64,000 bases of DNA from Thalia democratica (lineage: Eukaryota). The stretch is taken from NCBI GenBank assembly GCA_965202585.1, contig OZ241828.1, positions 62,806,001 through 62,870,000 on the forward strand, written 5' to 3'. Below are positions 1 through 51,413 of the stretch, piece by piece. The translations under genes and the position numbers were made by a program. The notes under the pieces are model-generated. The model did no database searches and was not told the DNA's origin. It was given only the letters and a program-made list of their open reading frames with translations. The first letter of the stretch is position 1. Every line of letters begins with the position of its first letter.

Positions 1-215
1 ATTCAATCATGTGTTTAACGTTTCAGTCATGTATATTTAAAATTCATAACTTTACTGCTTAACTTACTAACTGTTTATGTTGTCAATATAAGTTTATACC
101 ATTTGTTGAACTTTAATGCTATTTTCATTAAGCTAGAATTCAATCAAGTAAAAACTATATTTCAAAAACCTATATAACGGCTATTTTTACTGTTCAAAAC
201 TTTTACTTTACGCAG

Positions 216-2901
216 GATAACTTTCCAATGTACATGGAATTCCATTGCGCCTACGATCAGAAACTTGGATCATGGAACGTGGGAAATGTTTGTGAATCGA
301 ACAAGGCATATTTTAATGGCCCATGGACTAATTCTCGCTGCTGTAAAGGAGAAATGTGCAACAATATATCTGTTTCTGACGACAATTTCAAAGAAAAAGC
401 GAAAAAAGCTTACACAAGAATAAATAGTAGAAGATTGGTTTATGACGCTGATATCTATACTTATCACGAGCCGATTAACATGACATTAGTAAGTTTAAAA
501 AAGGTTTTTACTCTTAATAATATCAAAGATTTGTTTAGTTTTTTTATTGAAATTGTTAATTTTAACCTTGTCTTAAACTTTTTAAAAATATTTTCAAAAG
601 TGTAAGTAAAAAAAACCTATTCTTCTAACTAAAAATAGTTTATTTGTTTTTGTATCGGTAAAGATTTTGAAAACTAACTATAGTTACAGCTAGGTTCTAT
701 ATTTGATTGTTTAAGTTTTAATTATTGATTTGTTGTCTAAGAATCTTTGTAACACTTTTTTCTAAATAAGTTATGAATCATACACTTATAAATTGCATCG
801 TTTTGATAATATAAATAAGCAATGGTCAACCTACAAACATAAAATGTTATTTAATGACAATATCTAACACAGGCGTTTGACATTATTGACAATCAAACGT
901 CTTACACGCCTCCACTACCAAGTGTTTTGCCCTTTGCTACTGGGATAAAAAAGAGGGACTAAAAGTCCCAAGAAAAACCCCCAAACAATTCTCAAATAAA
1001 AATAAAAAGCACAGACAACGACGTGCAAATGCGGTAAGATGTATTTAGACGGTACAATGACAATGAGAAATGTTCTAGAAGATTCAGAATGCACTTCGAA
1101 TTGGACTTGTGAGTCTGATGGTCAATGCCTGACAAAGTACAAAGAAGAGGTAGTTGGATATTTATTAGTAACTTAGAATTTTTGCTAACTTACTAAAGTA
1201 TGCTAAATAATAAGAAATGGACCAAATATATTTTTAAGATTTAACAAATGTAAACCTAGTTTTTATAGTAAAGCGTTCAAATTATGTTTTACTGTATTTT
1301 TTGATATGTTCTTTTCTATTGAGTAAGTAAATTAATGCTCTACAAGAACATTTATTGTAGTTATTAATTGTAGTTAACAATTTTTAATATTTTCTTATAT
1401 TAAACTTTTTGTCAGTATAAGTAGAAAAATAAAATTTGTTGTTTGTACTATATCAAAATTATGCAGTAGTTTTAAAATAATTTAACTAATGCTAAATACA
1501 ATTTAAGCAAACTTTAAGCTATAGTAAATGTTTTGGTTTTAGAAACGTGAATAGTAATACGCTTATTTTAAATTATCAAAATGACTTTACAACGATTGTG
1601 CTAGGAAACAAATCTAATTGTCTACATACAGGAAAGCTGTTTGGTGATTAAGTAATCGACAAATAAATTTGCTCTAAGTTAATAGTCCATAAAAAGTTTT
1701 AAGTTTTTTTGAGTTTATTAGAATTACTTTCCGAACAAAATATGATATACTTAAATGACAAATTTTGATTTAAACTGCTCAATAATTCATTCAACATAGG
1801 GGCACGGAATGTACATGCAATTTTCTTGCGAAAAAGAACCTTTGCTGAAATGTCCAACCGACTCAGCTGTTCAGGTCAACTTTCGAGGAGCTGAAGAGGT
1901 TCACTGCTGCAAAGGAGAAATGTGCAATGACGTCAACGTTACTGACGCGAGCTACAAACTGAAAGTGTTGGAGGTGTGCAGCAGATTTGAGGAAAAGGAA
2001 GCTAACGGTCGTGGACTTAATTGCAATGAGGTCAGTCGGTGTTTTTGAGATTTGCTTATTTAAACAAAACAAATTCTTTTTTAATAAGAACACTTTTGTG
2101 TGACTTTGGCTAATTCAGATTTCTACACATGATTTATAGTACAGTAATAAAAATCTGAAGAATTATTGTCATTCGCTCGCAATAGTTAATGTATTTTTGA
2201 TCGAAATAGTTTATGGTTATAGATTTAAGTAAGTACTTTTTGTTAAAATAGTTTATTTAATACACTTGTTAACATTAATTTAATTATAATCCTGTTATTA
2301 TTCAATGTCCACTAGGTTAATTTTTACTTTTGTAGCTGTTTTTGATTATCTTATTTATTATTTTCATTAATTGTTCTAGGTTGAAAACTATCTTGATCAG
2401 AGGATAGAAAATACGGAGTCAAGTTAATTGGATTCTTTTTTAATAGTTTTTACAAATTAAAAATACTGTAAGTTGATGTTTTTCGTTTAGACAATTTTTG
2501 TATAAAAACCGTAAAGCTTTAGCTTTCTTATTAAATTGAATTAGTTTCTTAACCAATTCAAAAAAATTACTATAAAAATTGTTGTTAAATATTACAACTA
2601 ATATAGTTTAGCTAGTTATTGTTTTCACTCTTTAAAACTTCAATAACTTATAATTGGACTTAATTTTATTTAAATTGATGAAAAATTGATGTAAATGAAA
2701 AATACTAAATTGTAGAAACAACCATTATTTGTTTGTATTACTTAAAGTTAACTAATTTAATTTAAAATTTCTCTTAAGAATTGATATTTAAACGTTAATT
2801 TATCTTAAATGTTTTATATTTTAGGCATCAAGTAACTAAGGTGCAGTCATACATTTAAGTATCTGCTTCTACTTCTAGTATTTTATTTGACTTATTTATG
2901 A
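216..2901 (+). CDS. Partial (5' end outside window) gene with tandem activin/TGF-beta type I receptor-like ectodomains and a GPI-signal-like C-terminus; no transmembrane or kinase exons seen
   Basis: Exons 216-488, 1015-1149, 1800-2030 and 2380-~2422 join through phase-0 GT-AG introns. Exons 1015-1149 plus 1800-2030 give TTTCKCGK...SECTSNWTCESDGQCLTKYKEEGHGMYMQFSCEKEPLLKCPTD...VHCCKGEMCN, the 10-Cys order of type I receptor ectodomains (CxC..C..TC..DG.C..C..C..CCxxxxCN). Exon 216-488 is the second half of a paralogous domain (MYMEFHC...CCKGEMCN). The exon after the acceptor at 2824 encodes CSHTFKYLLLLLVFYLTYL-TGA (stop 2899-2901). The last splice junctions are uncertain. Confidence 0.72.
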
Positions 2902-5900
2902 GGCTCATAGATGGTAATAATATTAACTTACAAATTTTTCTGTTTTAATTGAAAGTTTTTAAATATTTTAGTTTCTTCTGATAATTGCCTATAATTGTTT
3001 TCTATACATTTTATTTTGTCTAGCATTCTATTTATTTACAAAATAATAAACTATTGTTTAATTCAAAAATGTTAAAAAATTTCTTATTAATTAAACTTTA
3101 AGTTGATTTTTTTTTTTTTGGGTAAAAATCAGTTTTTTTTAGCAATATAGATTGTAATATCTCAAGATTAGTAAAATATGTTTATTTTCTTGCACCAATA
3201 AAAATTAATCATGTACATATTACATAAAGATGGTAATTATCATCTGAAATGTTTAAAAATATCGAGCTGACTAAAATGATATTTATATCTTCAACATAGT
3301 GCATAAAATACTTTCTAATTTTACTTGTAAAACAAATATATTCTTTTTTCGTTTATATATGACTTAGTTTACTATCGTTATTAGTTAAATTAACTAGAAA
3401 TAAAACTTAATATACTTTTTTATTGCTTTTAACGTTTCAAAGTTTTTTTAATACCTCTGGAATGTTCTAATGGCGAACATAAGGTAACTTTAAAGTATAT
3501 AAAACTTAAAAGACTTGAAGTTTCAAAGCTAGACCAATATCGGAGAAAAGCTACAAAAAAAATTAGTAATTGTAAACCATAGGAATAACCTTTAAATGAT
3601 TCTTTTAAACAATTAATATAAACTTGATTACTCTTTTCTAAAAATTAACTCTTTAAAAAAATTAAGTTAAGTATTTTTAAGATTTAAAAGATTTATTAGC
3701 TTTTTTAATTAAACAAATATCATATCTAAGAATACTGGTCTGTAAAGGGTATCCATTGTTTTATAGCTTTAAGAAAGAATTTATTTTAAAACTATAAACA
3801 GCTGTAAAAAAAATTCTCTAGGCTTTCTGAAAACAATTTTCAATTTCCAAAACAACATTGTTTATTCGAAACAGTTAATTTCTTTCCAATACGGATATAT
3901 TGGCGTTTATCTTTCAAATCTAATTTTTATAAGTTCTTATAAACGTTGTTTGTCGCTGTTTTTTTTTATTGTTTGTTTTTTTTGTAGGTATGCTTATCCT
4001 AGTTGTAAAACTGATTAATTTTAAATATGTAACTACAAACTGTTAATCTATCTCTAACTAGTTTTGCTTAATTTCACTTGATTTTATCAACTGAGTATTT
4101 TCTGATGAAAGTTTTATTTGTTTACTTATTTAAATTTTTTTTTAATATCAGTTAATACCTATCTTTAACAGAAATTAAACAGACTTAATAAAAAACTAGC
4201 TGCTTATGTACACTGTAAAAAATAATTAAGAAGTTAAATAAAAATTAAAACATATCTGATTAAAAAAGCCTAACAAAACTAATAATTTAATGTAAATTTA
4301 TGTGTATAATAATAATATTAGATTTATTTATGTTTAGTATGACATAAATTTGAATTATAACTTCTGTGAATCTTTTTATTGTGAATCTGTTAGGCTACTA
4401 ATATTTCAGAACTTTGATAAGTATTGGTTTAAATACTGCATGCAACAAATGAATGAAAAGTTGTCTAAGATCAGTTTAAACAAATTTGTTTACGAGAGTA
4501 ATTTTTTCTAAATATTTTTCACCAGTTAAACAACTTTGCATATTTAAAAAGAAACAAGTATAAGCAATGAAAAATTATAAAAAAAAAATGTTGTTGTTAT
4601 TAGATATACCGTAATACTGAAAATTAAACTTTCTTTATACTCATTTTGTGCTAAAAATTTTCTTCACAGTCATTTATTTTAGCCTAAAATTTTCTAAATT
4701 TGTTTATACTATAAGTATTCAGTAATAATAAGTGAAAATATTAGATTGTTTTAAAACAAAAAGTGCAAAATGACCTTTATAGTTTGTAAGCATTGCTATT
4801 CAAATACTCATTCAAAAAGAATTCAGAATATAATTCAGAAAAAAATACTCAGATTACTTGAATGTAAAAACAACATTATCAAACAATTACTTGTTTTTAT
4901 ATTCTTCTTTTTAAGTAAAGTTTATACTTTTTATTCTGCTTTTAAATACTTTGTTATTTATTGCGACATTAACTTTTTGTATACGTTATAGTGACTTTAC
5001 TTTTCACATTTTTATTCAATTTTAAACTAATAACGTTATTTCAGTTTTACTTAAATTCTTAACAAGGTTTAATTGAATATAGTAAAACCTTAAGTAAAAC
5101 TGAATAAAAACAGTTTAAGCATAAGTAGTTTTTCTAAATAAGTTTTTAGTTTCAAAAAAAGTGTTAGATGTTTTGCTCTTTTTACATTAGTGCACTAGAT
5201 TATTTTCGAATAAGATTTTGTTATTTATTCAAGGATCTCCATTAATCATTCAAAATATGAAAAACAAATTTTTGACATCAAAACTTTAAAATTTGAGTTC
5301 ATTGTTCTTAAATCGAGAACTTTTATTTTGATCTTTAAAGTAAAAAGTACATAATGCATTATTTATAGTTGCTACTATTAAAGTAAAAAAAGTAAATAAA
5401 ATTAGTTCTGGAAAATAATAAATTCTACACAGTTATTTCCAACATAGTAACTTTGAAACTTATGAGACATTTACGTAGCTTTAATCGTTCAGTTATTATT
5501 GTGAATCCCATTGTACTCTTTAAATCTCACAGCTAAATATTTTGTTAGTTTTTTAATAAACTATCTGACGAGTAAATATAGAAGTAGCAACTAATTGACA
5601 ACAAACGAAGTAACTTACTTTATTAGAATAACCAACCGATTCTAAATTACTGCTTGTTTGAGCTTCTCTAGAACTTCTAGAATTTAGTTTTCTGTTTGCT
5701 TACTTGAATTTAATATCTGTTTAAACTACTTTTACTACTTATTGATTATAAATTTCTTAATGTACCGTTTTTGATCATACTTAAGATGTCTTTATTTTTT
5801 ATCTATACACAGTTGTATACCTAATTTAAAATATGTATAACTACCAACAAGTTTTATAATTATTTCGTTTAATAACCATGTTTAATCGAATACAACCTTT

Positions 5901-7881
5901 AATAAGTCATTCTTTTACTTAGTATAAGTATAATTTTATTTCAAACAAAAAGATTTTCGTATAATATCAATTAACAAATGTTCGCATAAGAACCTTAAAA
6001 TTTACGTAACAATTAAGTTTTAATTAATTTGATGTTTTTACATAGAAAAAAATAAACATATCACATTTACTTAAAGTAGCCAAATACTTTTATGTGTCAA
6101 ACGGTTCAGTTGAAATTGCTGGTTTATTAAGAGCTCGCTCTAGAATTTGGTAAAAATCAATTTGTATATTAACCATTTTATTATTTTTGATTCATTAACA
6201 GTTTCAACATCAACATCAAATTTGAAATGTTTTTTAGACAACTCAATATATTTTTTACTTTGCTTGATCTTGTATTCCCGTCATTAGTTGATAGCTTATT
6301 ATCTCAGTATTTATTTTGAATTTCTCTATGTGTATAAATGTCGTTTTAAAATAAGTTATTGTTAAGTTCAAGAAAAGTATATCAAATTTTTTTAATTGTT
6401 TTATTGATGAATAAAAATATAACACAGTAAAAATTCTTAACTATGTAGAACTCAATATAAATTTGGTGAGTTCTACATCTTAAGCTAGTCATTATAAATA
6501 TTTTATATTTTGATTAACTCGATTTTAAGCATCATCTAAAAGTGTAATAACAATAATTACTCTTTGAAAAATTTTTGACTTTTGTCTTGTACAAATATGA
6601 AGTTCTCGAATATCTTAGTTGTTGTCTCTATTTGATGATTTTGTGATAAGTCATGACCTAAAGAATTGCTAAAATTACCTTCATTATTTTTATATTAGTA
6701 TCTGAAAAATACAGGGATTATATATATTAATCAAAACATAGAATTTTTCTTTTAGTAAAATAGCTGTTTCAGAGTATTAGAAAAGATTATATAGAAAAAT
6801 TTAAAAATTTCAACATGTTTTTAAAGAAGGGTAATTTCATGCATTGAAAACAGATATATTTAAGTTTTTCAATCAAAGGTTTAAAAATGTTTTTCTAAAT
6901 GTATTTTAAACAATTTTGTTTTTGTTTACCTTATTGACTTTCAAAATCTAAACTATATTCAATAGACTTTTTGATAATAGTTTATTTGTTAACTAAATTA
7001 TTGTTTATCTGCACTATAAATCATTCTCAAAATATGAAACTGAATTTTATTAAAACTTGTTTCTAAAATTATTCAAAAAAATAATTTAGATAATAAGTAT
7101 TTAAAATTATTTACAACTTAAGATATTAACGGATGCTTATAGACTACAAACTTTAACTGTAAAAACATATTTTTAGGTATAATTAAAAAATTAAAAGTAC
7201 TATCTGCTAATGTGTGTTTAAAAGAAAATTTAAGTGCTTATATTTAAATAAGAAAAATATTTACTGAATTAAGAGTGGTTGTTAAATTTTTGATTCCTAC
7301 TTATTAGCTTAAAATATCAGAAATATTGGTTACACTACAAAAATTTTTAAATTTAATTAATCATATTTATATTATTCGTCTAGACTCTAGTTGTTAGTTT
7401 TTTGTTATTAAGTCATTATTCAATAATTAATAATCTTTCCTTATATAAACAATACTTAATCATAAAATCTGAAGAGTTTTGAATTAATTACATTTACCAT
7501 AACCTATTTTGTGAATACCTTTATTCTGATGACTGTTGATTAATCATTTTAATAACATCTTTTATTTGTTCCTTAATGAAGATCTGTTTTTACAGTGAAG
7601 CATTGTAGACTGAATAAAATACAATAGTTAAAACCTGTATATACAAAAAGTATTGTTTTCTTATTTTCATAAGTACTAAGCACTATAACTAATTTTTAAT
7701 AAATCCTTGTGGTTATCAGTTACATTAGTATATAATATAGTTTGTCATCCATTGAAAAAAAAATTAAGTAGTTTTATATTGAAAATTAACATTACTCACA
7801 ATGTTGAATCACAATCAACAAACTATAAAACAAAACTACTATGTTAACATAACACCCAACTAAGCAGTAAGCAACCAAATG

Positions 7882-7963
7882 TGACTCAAATGCTTCTCAT
7901 CTGTGAATCGCGCTTTTTTCTACACATAATATTGCGTCATTATCATTCAGATACTAGGTGGCA
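7882..7963. promoter_or_regulatory. Small cluster of candidate TF sites (AP-1 TGACTCA, CRE-like TTGCGTCA, CTCF-like ACTAGGTGGCA)
   Basis: TGACTCA at 7882-7888, TTGCGTCA at 7932-7939 and ATACTAGGTGGCA at 7951-7963, within a locally GC/CpG-richer patch. Motif match only. Confidence 0.2.
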
Positions 7964-10900
7964 ATGTTTTGTTTCTTTATTACTCTTCACTTTTTCTGGA
8001 AATAGCTCGTCAGCGAAAAAAGTTTTCTCTTGCTCTTTAACTAATTTATAACCATTTCTATTCTAAGGTTTTTCCTAATAAGGAAATCAAAAACTAACTG
8101 GCTCGTAAAAATTATCTACCTTAGCTCTTTAAATAATTTTTATTCTAAAGCTTTTCCTTATAGGGAATTGAAAAAATAATTCATCTATTAAATGTTGTAA
8201 GTAATAAACCTAGCTAAAACAAATTCATACCATGTACACTGCCTGGAAATCTAAGTGTTTATTGATTAATTTATAATTGTTAACATTAAAACATTAAAAA
8301 CAAATACAAAACATAATTACCTATTTTTAAAATTGCTAGTATTATTAAAACATTTGTAAAAAGTTAAAATATATGATAGTTAATACTAAAAAGATAATAA
8401 CTTTTGTTTGTAATTTAATTTTCTAAGTAAAAACTAAAGTAAAGTATGTATAGCCTTTTTGTTACAAACACATAGCAAGTAGTTGTAAAAGTTTAGTATA
8501 CGTTTGCAATAACAACAACGATACTTGTGCAGTTTACTTATTAGTTTTTTACAAACAATTATTTTCTATGTCTTCAACTATTTTATCTTAGTTTTTTCTA
8601 AAGATCTTTTTTGGTAGTTTTGTCAAACTTTGATGGCTAAACAGTCACTTAACTTTAATGAAAATATATTTTAGTAAACAAAATAAAGCTCAGTTTTAAA
8701 TGATTTTTAGTTTGCAGAAAACCCTAATGTAGTTTAGACCAGTGTTTTACAAAGCTAGCAGTAACGCCTCATTTTGGGAAATTATTGTCTATACTATGTC
8801 AGTTACTAGTGAGGCGATATTTTTGAATAGAAAGAAAGTAAATTGTTTTACAAACTTCTGCAAAAAAGCAATTATGAATATGAATTCGGAAAACTTTTAT
8901 TCAAAACCAAAATTAACATCTGGTAGTCGCAGAAAACATTTAAATGTAAGTGCAGTTGTAGATTTAAAATGTTAAGAGAATTCTATTTTTAAAAGATATC
9001 GAATGCTTAGAGTTTGAAAACTTTGCAGTAATAAAATTAGTAACAAAGTTAAGTTTTGAAACTAACTGTCTATGCCCTACACAACACTTTAAAGGTATCT
9101 GATGTCTGCGACCCGATAACTAAAAGATTCCTTCGTGCACCAAGTTCAGGGACCAACTATTTTGAGCGTTTTTTTGTCGTTCAATAAACACAGTTTAAAG
9201 TTTTTGGTCGCTCTTCTTCAATTTTATAATCTATTGTAGACTTTTAACATCATTATAAGATATTAAACAGTTTTTCTAAACTAACATATTGTTATGCCGA
9301 AAAAATTAAATTTTGCTCAAAAAAACTTAACCATCATAAAAAAATTATTTGTTTACATCGCTGTCATGTACATAATTGTATTCAGATATCAGCTTTTAAC
9401 ATAAGTTAAGAAGACTACGTAATACTTATACTAAATAAATTATTTAAAAGTCAACTTTATTAAATATTTCTTAAATTAGAACAATACTATGAAAAGTAAA
9501 ACTTGAATGTAAATTACAAAAAATTTTAAAGTTCAACAATAGTAATAACAAAAATAAAAATCAATTGCTCCCCGTGTAATGTCGTCAGCGTAGTATGACA
9601 GAAAATTTAACGTCAGTAAAAACAGCTTGTTATTTACTTTTTATAATAAAATAAGGTTTATTCAACACTTTGTTTTTAAAACTATAAATTTAGAATCCCT
9701 TGGCTGTTATCTCGACTTTTGGTTGAAAGTTTTCAGTTTAAAATAACTTATTAATACACTAATTTCAGTTCTTAATCACATCCAAAAATCAGAACTTGAC
9801 CAAGAGTTACACGACGACTCAACTTCAGATAACTCAAATTCTTAAAAATAAAATACTACATCTCAAGAAGTAATATACATTTTTTTCAATAAAAAAGTGA
9901 TGTAGTTCTAGTTAAAAATTCAAGATTGTAAAATAAAAGCTAATAATAGCATTTATATAACGAAATATTAAAACCTACTAAAATATACTATATTCAATTA
10001 CCTATTATAGCAATATCTCAAAAACACTCAATGTTTTCAAAAAAAAAGAAAAACCTTCTGTAGACTAATAATAAAGTTACAACTCTTTTATTTGAGTATT
10101 AGCTGCTTTTTGACATATGGCATTTAAAAAAACTTTGTCAGAGATTGAATTGTCGGAATTTAACTTGTAGTGCACCCTGACGAAGTAACTGCGTCTAGTA
10201 ATAACGGCTACTCTGAAATCAATTTCTTGCTATGATCAATCAATTCTCTCGCGTATAACATTAATAACAAGTACTACTTAGCTGTTACAATAAACTTTGA
10301 CAGTCATAGTAAACATCGAAAATCAAGTGCTATCTAAAGATGCAATCAAAGATTTCTCAGCTGGAAAACACCATTTGTAGCGTGATAAAGTCTTCAGAAT
10401 TCTTAGAGATTTTCTTAAAATCAACTGTTATTTGTTCTTGTACTTAATTTTGTATCATCTGTTATAAAACTTGTTTTTATCACTCTATTTTTAAACATGT
10501 AAGATGTTTAAAAATTTTGCTGTTTTAAAAAAGGATAAAATAAATTGTTTTACTTAGATTAAAAACTACAACTAGCACATGTTTTCTTAAAAATAAGAAA
10601 TAAACAAAATGTTTAATAGTTTCGAATCCAATGTAAAAAGGACATTGTTATTGCGTAATTTTGTAATATAATAATAAACATACATATATTTAAAAAATAT
10701 GTTTATTTAAATAGTATTTTTAACAAAATTTTACTAAGTATAAGACATATATAAGTGTTTAAAACAATGTTATTAAATAACACTGTTTTAAACTGTTAGT
10801 GTTAGTGTTAAAATACTTTTCTTAACAGCTGTTAACATAGATGATTTTGTTAGTTGTTCACACATTAATAAATTTAACAGTTATTATAGCTGTTATTTGA

Positions 10901-11280
10901 ATTAAATCAAAAGTGTACAAATCATAAGTTTAAAGGCAGTTTTTAATGTAAAAAAGTATATGGTATGAAAAAACATGATAATATAATTTAAAAAATTTAA
11001 AAAATAATTTTAAGAAGTCATATAAGATAAATACATATTTAATGACATTTTAAAATAGTAGTCAACTTAAACTTAAATATAATAAAACTTAAAGTTTATA
11101 TGAATGAAATGTATTACATTTTCTTATTATATGTCTAAACAATAAAGAACCTACATTTGTATGTATTTTTGCCTTAAAACTGTTAAAATTATTCTATAGT
11201 TGTTATAAGATGTCATGATAAATGATGCAGTAAATGTAGTTGTGATTTTATAAACTCAATTATTTCTAAGCTTACTAGTT

Positions 11281-11363
11281 GCCCTGTCAGTCTAGTGGTT
11301 TGATTGTCTTGAAATTAATGTCTTTAGGTTCGGGTAGTTCCAGATTCGAAGCTCGTACGGGTA
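11281..11363 (+). pseudogene. Degenerate tRNA-like sequence (tRNA-Pro-like), copy 1
   Basis: A-box-like CAGTCTAGTGG and B-box-like GATTCGAAGCTC. The 3' end ACGGGT can partly pair with the 5' GCCC. The overall layout resembles eukaryotic tRNA-Pro (GGCTCGTTGGTCTAG...CCGGGTTCAAATCCCGGACGAGCC). The anticodon arm is enlarged and irregular. Confidence 0.5.
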
Positions 11364-12292
11364 ACAATTTTTAAGAAAACTTTAACTTTAAAAAAAAAAA
11401 AAAACTTTTTAACTTAAAGTATTAAAAACATTTTTAAAGATATTTTTAAAATTTCAAAATTTAATTTAAAAAATTTTAGTTATTACTTAAGAACATATTT
11501 AAAGCTTTTTATAGAAAATTTATTTGAGATATTAATAAGACTTACACAAGTACTTTTTATATACTCCAATTATATATAATGTTTTAAAATATGGTCTCTT
11601 AAATATTTGTATTAAATATAATAAGTATATGTAATAATGATAAAATTAAATCTTTAGCTCATGAAAAAAGTATTAGCGTTTAAGGTTGAATATGTTTTTT
11701 ATGAAGTTATTTGTTGATATCCAAGATAAAATCTCTTACTTTTTTTTAATATTTCGGTAGATTTAAAGCTTTAGTTAGTTCTTTAAATCAGTATAATAAC
11801 TAATAAGTTCAAACTATAAAAAATATCATAATACTTTGTAAAAGTTTTTGGTTTTGTGACTTTTAGGAAATTGCTAAACTTTTTTATACTTGTCTATATA
11901 GATTATTTTTACCTTTTTAAATTATATCGTGATTTAATTTTAATATTAAGAATACTTGACTATGATAAAGAACTTGTGCTGTGCGAACAAAAATTATTCA
12001 AATTATTTACTATTCTAATCATGTTCTGACAATACAGACTAGGAAATATTTAAGAGACCATGTCACAAAAGTAATTTGTATTTTAAATATATAAAAAGTA
12101 CGTGTGTGAGTATTATCAATATCTACAGGTATTTTTTCTTGCTTGCTAGACTTTAAATAATTTCTTAAGTGATAATTAGAATTTAAAAAAAAATTCTAAG
12201 ATTTTAAAAATAACTGTAAAAATTTTTAAAGTATTGCATGTTAAAGAAGTTTATCATCTATAAAAAGTTTAAGTTTTCCCAAAAACAAAATG

Positions 12293-12388
12293 AGACCCGT
12301 ACGAGCTTCGAACCCGGAATTACCCGAACCAATTAACATTTTTTTCCAGGCAAACTAACTACTAGTGTATAGTATAGACCAATGGGCC
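12293..12388 (-). pseudogene. Degenerate tRNA-like sequence (tRNA-Pro-like), copy 2
   Basis: The minus strand reads GGCCCATTGGTCTA...TTCCGGGTTCGAAGCTCGTACGGGTC. The acceptor stem GGCCCAT/ACGGGTC pairs at 6 of 7 positions (one G-U). There is an insertion in the D-arm region. Confidence 0.5.
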
Positions 12389-16879: not shown

Positions 16880-19800
16880 TCAATTGCCTCTTGAACCCTT
16901 ATCGGCCCACTGTCCATGAGTTGGTTTCCAGTTTTGCAATTCCAATTCCAAGTGTTTGACGGCCTCGTTTTGTTCCCTGGACACATCATTATCGTCATCG
17001 TCATCAAATTCAAGCATTTCCAGAATATCTTCAGTCACCCCGCAGTCATCATCATCATCTTCATCATCAGTTTCAATCACATGGTCTTCAGTTTGAGAAG
17101 ATTTAGGTTTCTCTAGTTTTTCTAGAAGTTCTTTGACTTCTGAATATTCTTCAATTTTTTCCTTTGTGTGATCTACAACTTTTTCCTGTGAAACTTGTAA
17201 AATTTGTTCCTGTTGATCTTCTACAACTTGTCTCTTCTTATGTTCCACTATGTTTTCTTGTTTAATTTTTAGTTCTTCTAGTGTGAATGCAACAGCGGCT
17301 TCTGTTTCATCTTTTTCTACTGCTGGTGCTTCTGTTATTTTTTTAAAACTCATTTCGTATGTTTTCACTATTTTACGTTGTTGCTAATGTAAAAAGATAA
17401 TTTATATTGTTATTATACACAACATAAATTTGAATGTACAAGAAATTAGTAAAAGTAGTCTTAAGAAAATATATTCTCAGGATTACTAATGCACTTACCA
17501 TTGTTAGTTTTAAGGCGTTCGTCTACAAAATGAGTCAAGTCGTTGAAAGTTGACCTTTTTATTTTGCAAAAAACAAGTCCGATGCCTTCAGAGTCAATTA
17601 AGTCGCGGTTTATCAAGTCTTGTTCACGTTCCTGTTTTGAAATTATAAGTTTTGAGGTATTTTTATAAAGCCTTTATTAGAGGAAAGTTTTTCGTTTTAC
17701 ATTAAATTGACAATCTATTTTGTCTTGCATACAATAAAGGTTAGGTTTACCAAAATAAATTTATTACTTCCTTATAATTTATTATTAGTAAAAAGTAAGT
17801 AATGAGAATTTAAATGAGTAAAAGTTAGAGGATTTAAGCATGTTAGATTATACTAATAGTTCTTAGGATTGTACTGTACTTTTTTTTTTTGATTTTTCAG
17901 TACTAACTTTAATCATTTTAACCACTGTTCTCGTATCTTGCATGTTCAATTTCATGCACTTATCAAACAAATCCGTTTTTTCTTTACGAGAGGCAAGATC
18001 TTGATTTGTTTGTGGGAGAAAATATTTGTAGCTTTTGAAGTAACCGGCCACAGCTGAAACTGGAAACTGCATTCCTTGATTGTCACTGACGGTGCTTGGA
18101 AAAATATTTAATAAATATTAGTATTGTTATCTAGATGTATGTGCCATTATAACGTTATTTGATAATATTAGGAATATAAAATTTCGTTTTTCAATTAAAA
18201 AAAAAAGTCTTTTCTTTTTTAAAAAACTCAGTATACTATTAAACATAAAACTATAAATTAGTTAGAGTTTTTCTGCAAAAGACTAATACTTCTTAATGTA
18301 CACTGTGCATAGTATTATTTTAAATACAGAAACACTACACTTTAACAGTAGTCTATAATAGATACAAATAAAATTACCATTTGTCTATTTTCTTCTTTTC
18401 AACTGCAGTTGAATCAGGTAAAGTTTTAGACAAATTAATTAAGAGGCGTGGTTTCTTCTTCAACGTGTTATTCTATTAAGTAAAATTTTGTTGTACTTAA
18501 AATTGTACTTTAAAGTTGTTTTTAATTGAACAAAGCTGACTGATTTTGAATTTGTTATGTAAAAATGACTTTGTATTATCATTTCACTTCATTTCTAAAA
18601 CAGTAAATTATAAAATAGTTAAGCAATATGATCAATAAATTGTTGTTTGATTTTCTAGTTTTATCGTTTTTTTCTTACAAATTAGGCTCACAGAGAAACA
18701 AACTCAAACTATGATAGTAAAATATGTATCGTCAGTCTTTAAGAAAGTGTGTAAGTTACATTACATTCAGTAAGGGTAATTTTATATGTACTTTTAAACA
18801 ATTACCTTGCATATACTCTTTCGCTTCAGTTGGTTGTTTTCAAGTTTATTTAGAAATAAACTGTTTTCTTTAAATTTTTCTTCAGAACTGTTTTTACTTA
18901 TAATATTTAAATTGTGTTCATTTGAAAAAAATGGAATATTGTTACTTTGAGTTTTATTTCTACAGTAATTAGTGCCATACTTATTTTGATATGAAGAAAT
19001 CATTTTAGTAGTATTTTTCTCTTGAGATGAAGAAATTATTTTAGAGCCATTTTGCTCTGAAGATAAACACATTTTTTTAAAACAATTTTTATTTTGGTTA
19101 GAAGAAATATTTTTAGTTGCAGTTTTATTTTGAGAACAATTAAATATTTTAGTGCCATTTTTCTCCTTAGTTGGAAACATCGATTTAATACCATTTTTCA
19201 ATTAAGTTGATAAAATATTTTTAGAGTAATTTTTGTTCTGAGTTGAGAAAAACTTTTTAATGCCATTTTTCTCTTTAGCTGAGGAAATAACTATAGTGAC
19301 CTTTTTATCTTTAGCTTGAGTAATCTTTTTAGTCATATATTTCTCTTTAGCTGAAACAAACTTTTTAGTAGTATTTTTTGTTTGTGTCGAAGAAATCTTT
19401 TTAGAAACACATTTTTTTTTTAGCTAAAGAAGTCTTTTTAGTGCCATTTTTCTTTTGAGTTAAGCTAGTCTCACTTTTTACCGGTGCTTTGGTGTCTCGA
19501 GCGAGAGGAAGTTTTGACCATCTATAATTGCAAAGTTTTAAATAATAACTTTTTTTATAAACAACCAAATGTTAATTAAAAAAGTAAACTTTAAATTAAT
19601 CACGTTTGAACTACTATCTAATAGAATGATTTTAAAGCATAAGCTTAAATTGATAATTGTTTTTATAAAATAAAAAAAAAATCAATAATGAAACTTAATT
19701 TATTGAACTTTTAGTATTTTAATGTACTTATTCGATATAAAAACCTCGCATAGAATTCTTTTATCATTGTTTTGCTGCACTGAGTTACAAAGGCTTCTGA

Positions 19801-50007: not shown

Positions 50008-51413
50008 TTAGTTGACACACGCTACGTTGAAGACGGCCACCGCAAAAAAGCTCATTAGAAAGTTGACACCAAATGTTCTTCCACCGCAGCTGGCTGGGAT
50101 GTTTTTGTCCTTCAAATCATTGCACTTGTCGGTCGTGCAACAGTGAGCTTTGACGTCACTGCATTGTAACAAAAAAAAATATTATTTTCTGTTTACATTT
50201 GAACTTTTGAACATTTGTTGCGTTAATATTCTACGGCAACTTCATTTGGAAGCTATGCTTGAAACTACAGTGCTAGTTAAACACAACTTGTTCACTATAA
50301 GTTTAACTTTGAATATCATGTTTTTAATTTTAATAGGTTTGTAACTTTTTAAATTTGTTCACACCAAAATTATTTTAAACAATGATCATCCTAGATGTTT
50401 GATTGAAAAATAGACTTTGCAAATCAATTTTTAAAACACTTTTTAAAACTTTAACAAAACTGAAAAATTATCAGTTTCTTATTCTATAAAAGTTTCACTT
50501 AAACAAATTGTATTTTTTTTAATGCTTAAAACTAACTTCATTTATTTTTAATAAAAAACTAGAAAACATCGTACAGCATGTTTGCAAGGTAAGAAAAAGT
50601 TATTTAAACCAATAAAAGTAGTATAAATTAACAACTATCAGCTCACCCCTTGCTCACTTGAAATTTGTTACCTGCAACCTGGAACAATACGCCTGCATTA
50701 AACTTTCTCTGTACTTCAGTAACGTTCCCATAATGCAAATCGCAAAACATCTGGCAGCTCATATACGTCACGTCTTTTACTGTGAAGCAAATTAAAACGC
50801 TCAAAATTTTACTGTAAAACAAAGGGTCATTTTTAACTTGTGTGTTGATGAGCACTAGAATAATACTGTGAATAAATCACAATGTTAAGTACATTGTTAA
50901 ATTTTTGTAATTTTTATTTTCTTAACTAATAAGCCTTACTAGTTTACTTGCTTTACTATTCGTGACATATAAAGGCTAATTTTTAAACATAATTTCCTAC
51001 AAATATTGTAAAAAACTTATACTTTGAACTTTTTGAATAAACTTCGTTAATAAACAAAATTATAAAATAGCTTTCCTAGATTATTTTTATCTATAAAGTG
51101 ATAAATGTAGCGTGATTTATTTTTATGACACGCAATAAATAAATTAAAATAAATTTTACTACGGTTTATCCACAATAATATGCCACAAACTTTTTGTTCC
51201 GTTTAGTTCCATTTCTTCCATTTCCAACCGCAAGCATTTGTGTCCGATCCCTGTTGAGGAATCGCAAGCCACCTCTGTAAGACCACCAGATTTCCACGCC
51301 TCGATTTCCGGCATGAACCCGCTAGAATGACCAATTTTGTAGCCCACTTTACACTGAAATTGCGCAGCGATGGTTTGCGCTATGAGTAGCAGACAGAGTC
51401 TTTTGCAACTCAT
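50008..51413 (-). CDS. GPI-anchored Ly6/uPAR (three-finger) domain protein, 168 aa
   Basis: Exons 51413-51191, 50779-50647 and 50158-50008 are phase-compatible. Signal peptide MSCKRLCLLLIAQTIAA, an 8-Cys domain ending CCTTDKCN, and a GPI-like tail ASCGGRTFGVNFLMSFFAVAVFNVACVN*. Confidence 0.88.

Follow-up and report, generated by a model that had tools for sequence, protein, structure and literature searches.

A putative tunicate-private gene with tandem three-finger modules in Thalia democratica

Does a locus at one end of a 64,000-nucleotide stretch of the Thalia democratica genome (GenBank assembly GCA_965202585.1, contig OZ241828.1, forward-strand positions 62,806,001 to 62,870,000; 'the window' below) encode a new TGF-beta decoy receptor, or a protein of another kind built from small disulfide-rich domains? 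An initial annotation of positions 216–2901 had described tandem ectodomains of the TGF-beta type I receptor type on a glycosylphosphatidylinositol (GPI) tail, and had proposed a decoy or co-receptor. Our analysis favours, with a probability of about 0.6, a lineage-private tunicate gene whose product would carry two disulfide-rich three-finger modules on basic stretches and serve as an extracellular binding protein. Here we set out the exons and their conservation, the placement of the modules among three-finger proteins, the allelic state of the linker between them, and the alternatives to this reading.

One and a half modules on three conserved exons

The window is very AT-rich (G+C content about 24%), has no runs of N, and holds one and a half modules, namely the second half of module 1 and the whole of module 2. 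These lie in three GC-richer islands on the forward strand, where phase-0 open frames are bounded by GT/AG sites. The first exon in the window, E2a (216–488; 91 codons, AG at 214–215, GT at 489–490, phase 0 at both ends), is the second half of module 1 and encodes five cysteines, including those of CCKGEMCN, followed by a basic linker of 42 residues without cysteine. Module 2 begins with E1b (core at 1015–1149; 45 codons, AG at 1013–1014, GT at 1150–1151), which opens with TTTCKCG and supplies five cysteines, and continues with E2b (1800–2030; 77 codons, AG at 1798–1799, GT at 2031–2032), which supplies five more and ends in a 34-residue tail with an extra cysteine pair, also kept in the distant family members P0003 and P0004. 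Joined, E1b and E2b give the ten-cysteine pattern C-x-C-x19-C-x5-C-x5-C-x16-C-x7-C-x17-CC-x4-CN. Within the window, E2a and E2b are paralogous (32% identity, tblastn E 5e-8), with MYMxFxC and CCKGEMCN in common, and a tblastn-type search of the full 64 kb located no third module. The window does not reach the first half of module 1, which is situated upstream and was found on a contig (L001) of the relative described next. No Rfam model matched positions 1–8000, and all three read-index polymorphisms listed in E2a are synonymous.

A divergent lineage of the same locus, here called R, is present on Tara Oceans metagenome contigs (L001 and L002; L003, L011, L012 and L014, the latter four about 99% identical to one another where they overlap). 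Its DNA is 86–89% identical to that of the window (81–87% for L001), and R probably represents another species than that of the window, since it is too distant to be either of the two organisms in the read index. The R contigs are collinear with window positions 8–725 and 750–4960, so the tandem layout is conserved. Every splice site, the tandem order and all 17 cysteines of the three exons are retained in R, and the only exon indels, of 9 nucleotides in E1b and 6 in E2b, are both in frame; the 6-nucleotide insertion, behind position 1999, is also polymorphic in the reads and is the state seen in R. The R orthologue of E2a (P0001 on L001) has 71% protein identity, keeps five of five cysteines and the GTAAGT donor, and gives a nonsynonymous-to-synonymous rate ratio (dN/dS) of 0.46, with corresponding values of 0.29 for E1b (87% DNA identity) and 0.74 for E2b (91% identity). 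Under simulated neutral change, the probability of acquiring no stop while keeping all cysteines was 0.002 for E2a, 0.048 for E1b and 0.041 for E2b. Because of the conservation in R, the dN/dS values and these probabilities, we regard the three exons as genuinely coding, with a constraint that is moderate to weak. The exons, their phases, the paralogy of E2a and E2b, and the module 1 half on L001 all bear out the earlier description of tandem, two-exon, phase-0 modules with ten cysteines.

Relatives beyond R are few. We built a profile from the two second-half exons; among 1.84 billion representative proteins it matched five only, all of them short open reading frames (ORFs) on marine metagenome contigs, mostly from Tara Oceans, and no receptor or named Ly6 protein was among its matches at E 0.001. 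As all five belong to this lineage, the gene is judged to be lineage-restricted. Neither E2b nor the long first-exon ORF of R matched any protein in word-based searches, and an exact DNA motif scan of the Joint Genome Institute metagenomes returned 0. Within its small family, the distant members P0003 and P0004/P0012 carry the family motifs, one contig (L013) holds a complete single module, and one copy (P0005 on L007) is without the CC..C motif.

Placement among three-finger proteins

Each of the modules 1 and 2 has ten cysteines and ends in CCKG[ED]MCN, which fits the 8–10 cysteines and the CCxxxxCN pattern of Ly6/uPAR (LU) domains. Of the features of type I receptor ectodomains, the CxC start, TCESDGQC (the motif TCxxxGxC) and CCKGEMCN (CCxGxMCN) are present. 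We scored Pfam models exon by exon, with cut-offs of 20.9 bits for Activin_recp (PF01064), 33.9 for CD59 (PF25152) and 23 for BAMBI. The best match, that of R's E2a to Activin_recp, reached 18.5 bits (E 0.004), below the gathering cut-off, and lesser matches of the same exon were to CD59 (15.9 bits) and to the BAMBI N-terminal domain (13.5 bits, E 0.089); UPAR_LY6 was not matched at the exon level. Feature-atlas searches gave weak leads, at 0.76–0.80, to ecTbetaR2, Activin_recp and a Bouncer-like UPAR_LY6 cluster, which belong to the same clan. An EGF-like reading of the first exon was dropped, its cysteine positions being unfitting.

A true type I receptor gene served as control. It was the sole return of a motif-based protein scan and lies on metagenome contigs of an unrelated animal (L008–L010, 38% GC), and it is not counted as kin; it comprises two ectodomain exons, a transmembrane (TM) exon, an SGSGSG box and the first kinase exon, and its ectodomain carries CCKGDMCN. 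The matching exon of this gene, on L009, scores 16.6 bits against Activin_recp. It aligns to E2a with 33% identity over 51 residues, in an alignment that is biased, L009 having been chosen through the motif CCKG[ED]MC. The first-half exon E1b showed no similarity to receptors in tblastn and PDB sequence searches. When the TM, glycine-serine-rich (GS) box and kinase pieces of L009 were searched against the 64-kb window by tblastn at E 1, none of them was found, in agreement with the earlier statement that TM and kinase exons are absent.

Two structural characters lean away from a receptor. A tight CxCx2-3C loop is expected in type I receptor ectodomains. Module 2 has no such loop, its third cysteine lying 19 residues past the second, whereas L009 has CVCNNC. 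The internal intron falls seven residues after Cys5 and nine before Cys6, which is the tip of loop 2, while that of L009 stands immediately before Cys5. Genes for LU-domain proteins encode each domain on a two-exon set with an intron at the tip of loop 2 and flanking introns in phase 1 (PMC6600238). We thus place the modules in the three-finger superfamily, by motif and gene structure, and leave the subfamily undecided between Ly6/uPAR and receptor: on the one hand, the intron at the tip of loop 2 and the missing tight loop lean to Ly6/uPAR ancestry; on the other, the CxC start and the TCxxxGxC motif lean to a receptor. What survives of the type I receptor identification is the set of shared motifs and the rank of Activin_recp as top match; that match is below its cut-off with CD59 close behind, and the absent Cys2–Cys3 loop and the Ly6-like intron leave the identity as such unsupported.

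Among known systems, multi-LU proteins (uPAR, C4.4A/LYPD3, CD177, TEX101 and the zebrafish two-LU GPI proteins) resemble the locus in their tandem modules, each on its own two-exon set whose flanking phases are symmetrical and whose intron interrupts the tip of loop 2 (PMC6600238), as well as in ten cysteines and a CCxxxxCN ending. The locus differs from them in having flanking introns in phase 0 rather than 1, a CxC rather than a CxxC start, a loop 1 of 19 residues, a 7–8 disulfide kept in both modules, basic linkers of about 90 residues, no GPI signal in the exon of the last module and no UPAR_LY6 match. The type I receptor ectodomain and BAMBI share with it CxC, TCxxxGxC and CCxGxMCN, with Activin_recp as the top sub-threshold match and BAMBI listed; what sets the locus apart from them is the lack of a TM segment, GS box, kinase and tight Cys2–Cys3 loop, the duplication of the module, the sub-cut-off scores and, with respect to L009, the intron position. 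GPIHBP1 is similar in that its three-finger domain comes right after a long, highly charged, low-complexity stretch (PMC6600238). In contrast to GPIHBP1, the locus has two modules and no GPI signal was found in its last module exon; its tract is basic (His/Lys/Arg/Asn pentapeptides) rather than acidic and shares an exon with the first half of the module.

Linkers, allelic variation and the end of the gene

The first exons of both modules extend upstream of the first cysteine, in frame, into basic linkers. The proposed two-exon module accordingly holds good as to one internal intron each, but not as to a first exon starting at the first cysteine. In R, the first exon of module 2 runs for 97 codons without a stop from an acceptor equivalent to window positions 871–872, through a Pro/Lys-rich linker to TTTCKCG, which places about 90 Lys/Pro-rich residues between the modules. 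The first exon of module 1 in R belongs, on L001, to an ORF exceeding 200 codons, in which a polar N-terminal part is followed by repeats and then by TTTCKCG. The repeat has a period of 15 nucleotides and 13.6 copies with 0 indels, is in frame with module 1, and encodes the pentapeptide N-[KR]-K-H-x, so that some 68 residues of His/Lys repeats directly precede the module.

In the window, the corresponding linker part of the module 2 first exon (873–1014, forward strand), open in R, is out of frame: relative to R, this allele lacks one nucleotide at 936/937 and has gained two at 1013–1014, and an exon starting at 873 would terminate at a TAA at 960–962. The acceptor CACAG immediately before 1015 arises from the 2-nucleotide insertion itself and is the only one that keeps module 2 in frame; it is preceded by A-rich sequence with a poor pyrimidine tract. 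The reference haplotype is real, as an exact read contig covers 762–1042. Reads of the same organism and of a sister organism also contain haplotypes that lack the 2-nucleotide insertion, and one haplotype of the sister organism (organism B) has an additional C behind 929. The reference allele would thus be either a linker-skipping variant that uses a new acceptor or a null allele.

Highly divergent haplotypes (8–12%, plus indels) occur alongside near-identical ones at 69–498, 762–1035 and 1426–1879, and divergent haplotypes across the gene are present in reads of both the window's organism and the sister organism.

The tail was another element of the initial annotation that was not confirmed. 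It consisted of a short hydrophobic C-terminus on a forward-strand mini-exon (2860–2901, within an ORF at 2836–2901; AG at 2858–2859, TGA at 2899–2901), from which a GPI linkage had been deduced. The mini-exon has a weak acceptor, and although it ranks first in hydrophobicity among 74 AG-started short ORFs in 2031–7800, three others come close. In R, a 1-nucleotide insertion at 2883 shifts its frame after eight residues and the stop is lost; because the tail is thereby altered, the mini-exon is probably non-coding. E2b itself has no hydrophobic tail, and the omega site with hydrophobic signal that marks a GPI-anchored Ly6 protein was not found there. Comparison with R revealed no conserved coding exon downstream, on the forward strand in 2031–4960 or on the minus strand in 3200–4960.

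How, then, does the gene end? The GTCAGT that follows E2b may serve as a donor in phase 0 or may open a short read-through, VSRCF-stop (2031–2048, forward strand); the GT is present in four of five family members. In all four members that have GT[AC]AGT after E2b, this sequence also reads V-S, and a stop follows within one to four codons. The read-through is VS-stop in R and in L006/L013, and VTWCF-stop in L007. A possible poly(A) signal, AATAAA, at 2144–2149 (forward strand) lies 98 nucleotides past the read-through stop and is conserved in R, and its support is weak, given that hexamers of this type occur in the window at 0.68 per 100 nucleotides. The gene may end just after E2b, or may splice to a further exon that we did not recognise.

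Possible function and genomic surroundings

Several other explanations can be set against a two-module binding protein. The likeliest of these, though still unlikely, is that the gene is decaying in the window's species and that the reference is a null allele, truncated after module 1 at the TAA at 960–962. The two frameshifting linker indels and the poor pyrimidine tract at 1013–1014 speak for it, as do an exon conservation near that of the introns, the dN/dS of E2b and the loss of CC..C in P0005/L007; yet the module 2 exons of the window are open with all 12 of their cysteines, exon indels come in multiples of three, other haplotypes of the same and sister organism are without the 2-nucleotide insertion, and that insertion creates an in-phase CAG acceptor. 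It is less likely again that the locus makes two single-module products, or uses mutually exclusive or alternative exon pairs, each product ending after its second exon at the VS-stop. GT[AC]AGT, which reads as V-S, indeed follows every second-half exon, and a stop comes within one to four codons in five of the six such exons that have it (E2a of the window stays open for 38 codons); L013, with its single module, ends in this way with nothing coding in the 1.5 kb downstream, and with all phases 0, skipping would be frame-neutral. But the first exon of module 2 has neither a start nor a signal sequence: there is no methionine start upstream of its acceptor in the window or in R, so it must be joined to an exon further upstream. 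A conserved GTAAGT donor of the right phase is available at the end of E2a, no exon candidate is seen between 489 and 872, and the read-through tails of E2a are unrelated between the window and R. A transcript carrying the two modules together would explain these exons most simply.

The multivalent trap or co-receptor that the initial annotation had in mind, GPI-anchored or secreted and made from duplicated type I ectodomains to bind TGF-beta, BMP or activin, is very unlikely. It can call on the three receptor-like motifs, on the absence of kinase exons, and on the Activin_recp score of R's E2a, which is as good as that of the true receptor exon, as well as on the L009 alignment. However, all the Pfam matches are sub-threshold with CD59 nearly equal, the L009 alignment carries the bias of its motif choice, the tight loop is missing and the intron is Ly6-like, the GPI exon is not conserved, and the first-half exon has no receptor similarity. 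Lineage restriction, a dN/dS near 0.5 and a frameshift polymorphism are also unlike a regulator of a conserved morphogen, and a BMP/activin trap fits poorly with a gene of this history. An equally improbable variant is a secreted, tunicate-private trap with modules derived from a receptor or BAMBI, in which polybasic tracts would pin the protein to matrix or tunic, the modules would sequester BMP/activin or other cystine-knot ligands, and allelic linker variants, among them exon-border shifts brought about by indels, would tune its reach. As far as the present data go, nothing ties the gene to a GPI anchor or to a role in TGF-beta signalling. Still more remote is an intracellular protein of nuclear type, in which the His/Lys repeats would be localisation or nucleic-acid-binding tracts and the cysteine modules would bind metal. 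The available 5' part of R has no visible signal peptide, and its N-terminal region is polar and highly basic; but the number and spacing of the cysteines and the CCxxxxCN ending fit disulfide-bonded three-finger domains, the weak family leads are all to extracellular three-finger families, and the 5' end of the gene lies outside the data in hand.

The reading that we prefer, a lineage-private extracellular binding protein, would work as follows. The modules, belonging to the Ly6/uPAR/activin-receptor superfamily, arose by tandem duplication of a two-exon unit, with long, basic and probably disordered stretches preceding and separating them, and the tail of module 2 adds an extra disulfide pair. 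The product would be extracellular, either secreted or surface-bound, and would bind a protein partner through its two three-finger heads. By analogy with GPIHBP1, in which a charged tail serves its LU domain, the polybasic tracts could hold or steer the protein onto polyanionic surfaces. Because the gene evolves fast and has deep allelic divergence, we infer that the partner changes fast too, as in defence, gamete recognition or self/non-self recognition, rather than being a conserved BMP or activin ligand. The reference haplotype would then have either a linker shortened through the new acceptor or a defective allele.

A number of results weigh against this reading. The three window exons match no Pfam model even at E 10, and no exon, in the window or in R, reaches any Pfam cut-off. 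Searched against PDB sequences, single exons and exon profiles met with matches at chance level only (a fibrillin EGF at E 0.76, bL31, PRORP). The three-finger fold is a beta core with the disulfides 1–5, 2–3, 4–6, 7–8 and 9–10; a half-domain of the E2a/E2b type, folded alone from alignment A7, had a predicted local distance difference test (pLDDT) score of 52.6. In the comparison of the window with R, exons are conserved barely more than introns, in keeping with weak constraint, and the linker ahead of module 2 carries frameshifts in the reference allele. A signal peptide was not found in the 5' part available on L001, the 5' end being beyond both the window and that contig. None of the RNA runs contains the locus, the three runs that do being DNA contig sets, and the proposed function is deduced from sequence.

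Elsewhere in the window, a separate single-domain gene of Ly6 type lies on the minus strand (50008–50172 and 51159–51413, read as 51413–51159 and 50172–50008), with a signal peptide and the first half of its domain in one exon, and an other exon that ends in CCTTDKCN and a hydrophobic tail. It is like the modules described here in having a two-exon three-finger domain with a CCxxxxCN ending, and unlike them in its signal peptide, its single domain and the GPI-type tail in the same exon after CCTTDKCN; its similarity to E2b is marginal (E 0.074). Downstream of our gene, an AT-rich block at 3247–4960, in which neither strand has a conserved ORF, is mostly 90–100% identical to R, dipping to 82–88% near 3606–3635 and 4558–4588, compared with 75–88% in the introns just upstream; the step, at about 3240, is sharp. 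Within the block, 3600–4200 is a high-copy repeat, while 3247–3600 and 4260–4960 are at single-copy depth; in all three DNA runs, contig word depth at 3801–4200 and 5201–5400 was 2,500–9,000, against about 100 elsewhere. Two GC-richer islands at 11279–11371 and 12245–12355 share ...SGFEARTG... in opposite orientation and look like copies of a short interspersed repeat. Finally, a highly acidic (Asp/Glu-rich) ORF of 162 codons on the minus strand (16880–17368), with neighbouring minus-strand ORFs up to about 19200, belongs to a separate gene.

On present evidence, the locus does not add a new component to TGF-beta/BMP signalling. If expressed, it would represent a small family confined to a single lineage of planktonic tunicates, in which tandem three-finger domains are paired with polybasic, His-rich repeats. 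This is a pairing that we have not found described, the nearest analogue being GPIHBP1 with its acidic tract. The locus also shows that in-frame duplication is open to a three-finger unit of two exons whose borders are symmetrical and in phase 0, and its alleles provide a natural case of indels, in a disordered linker, that go together with what may be a shift of an exon border.

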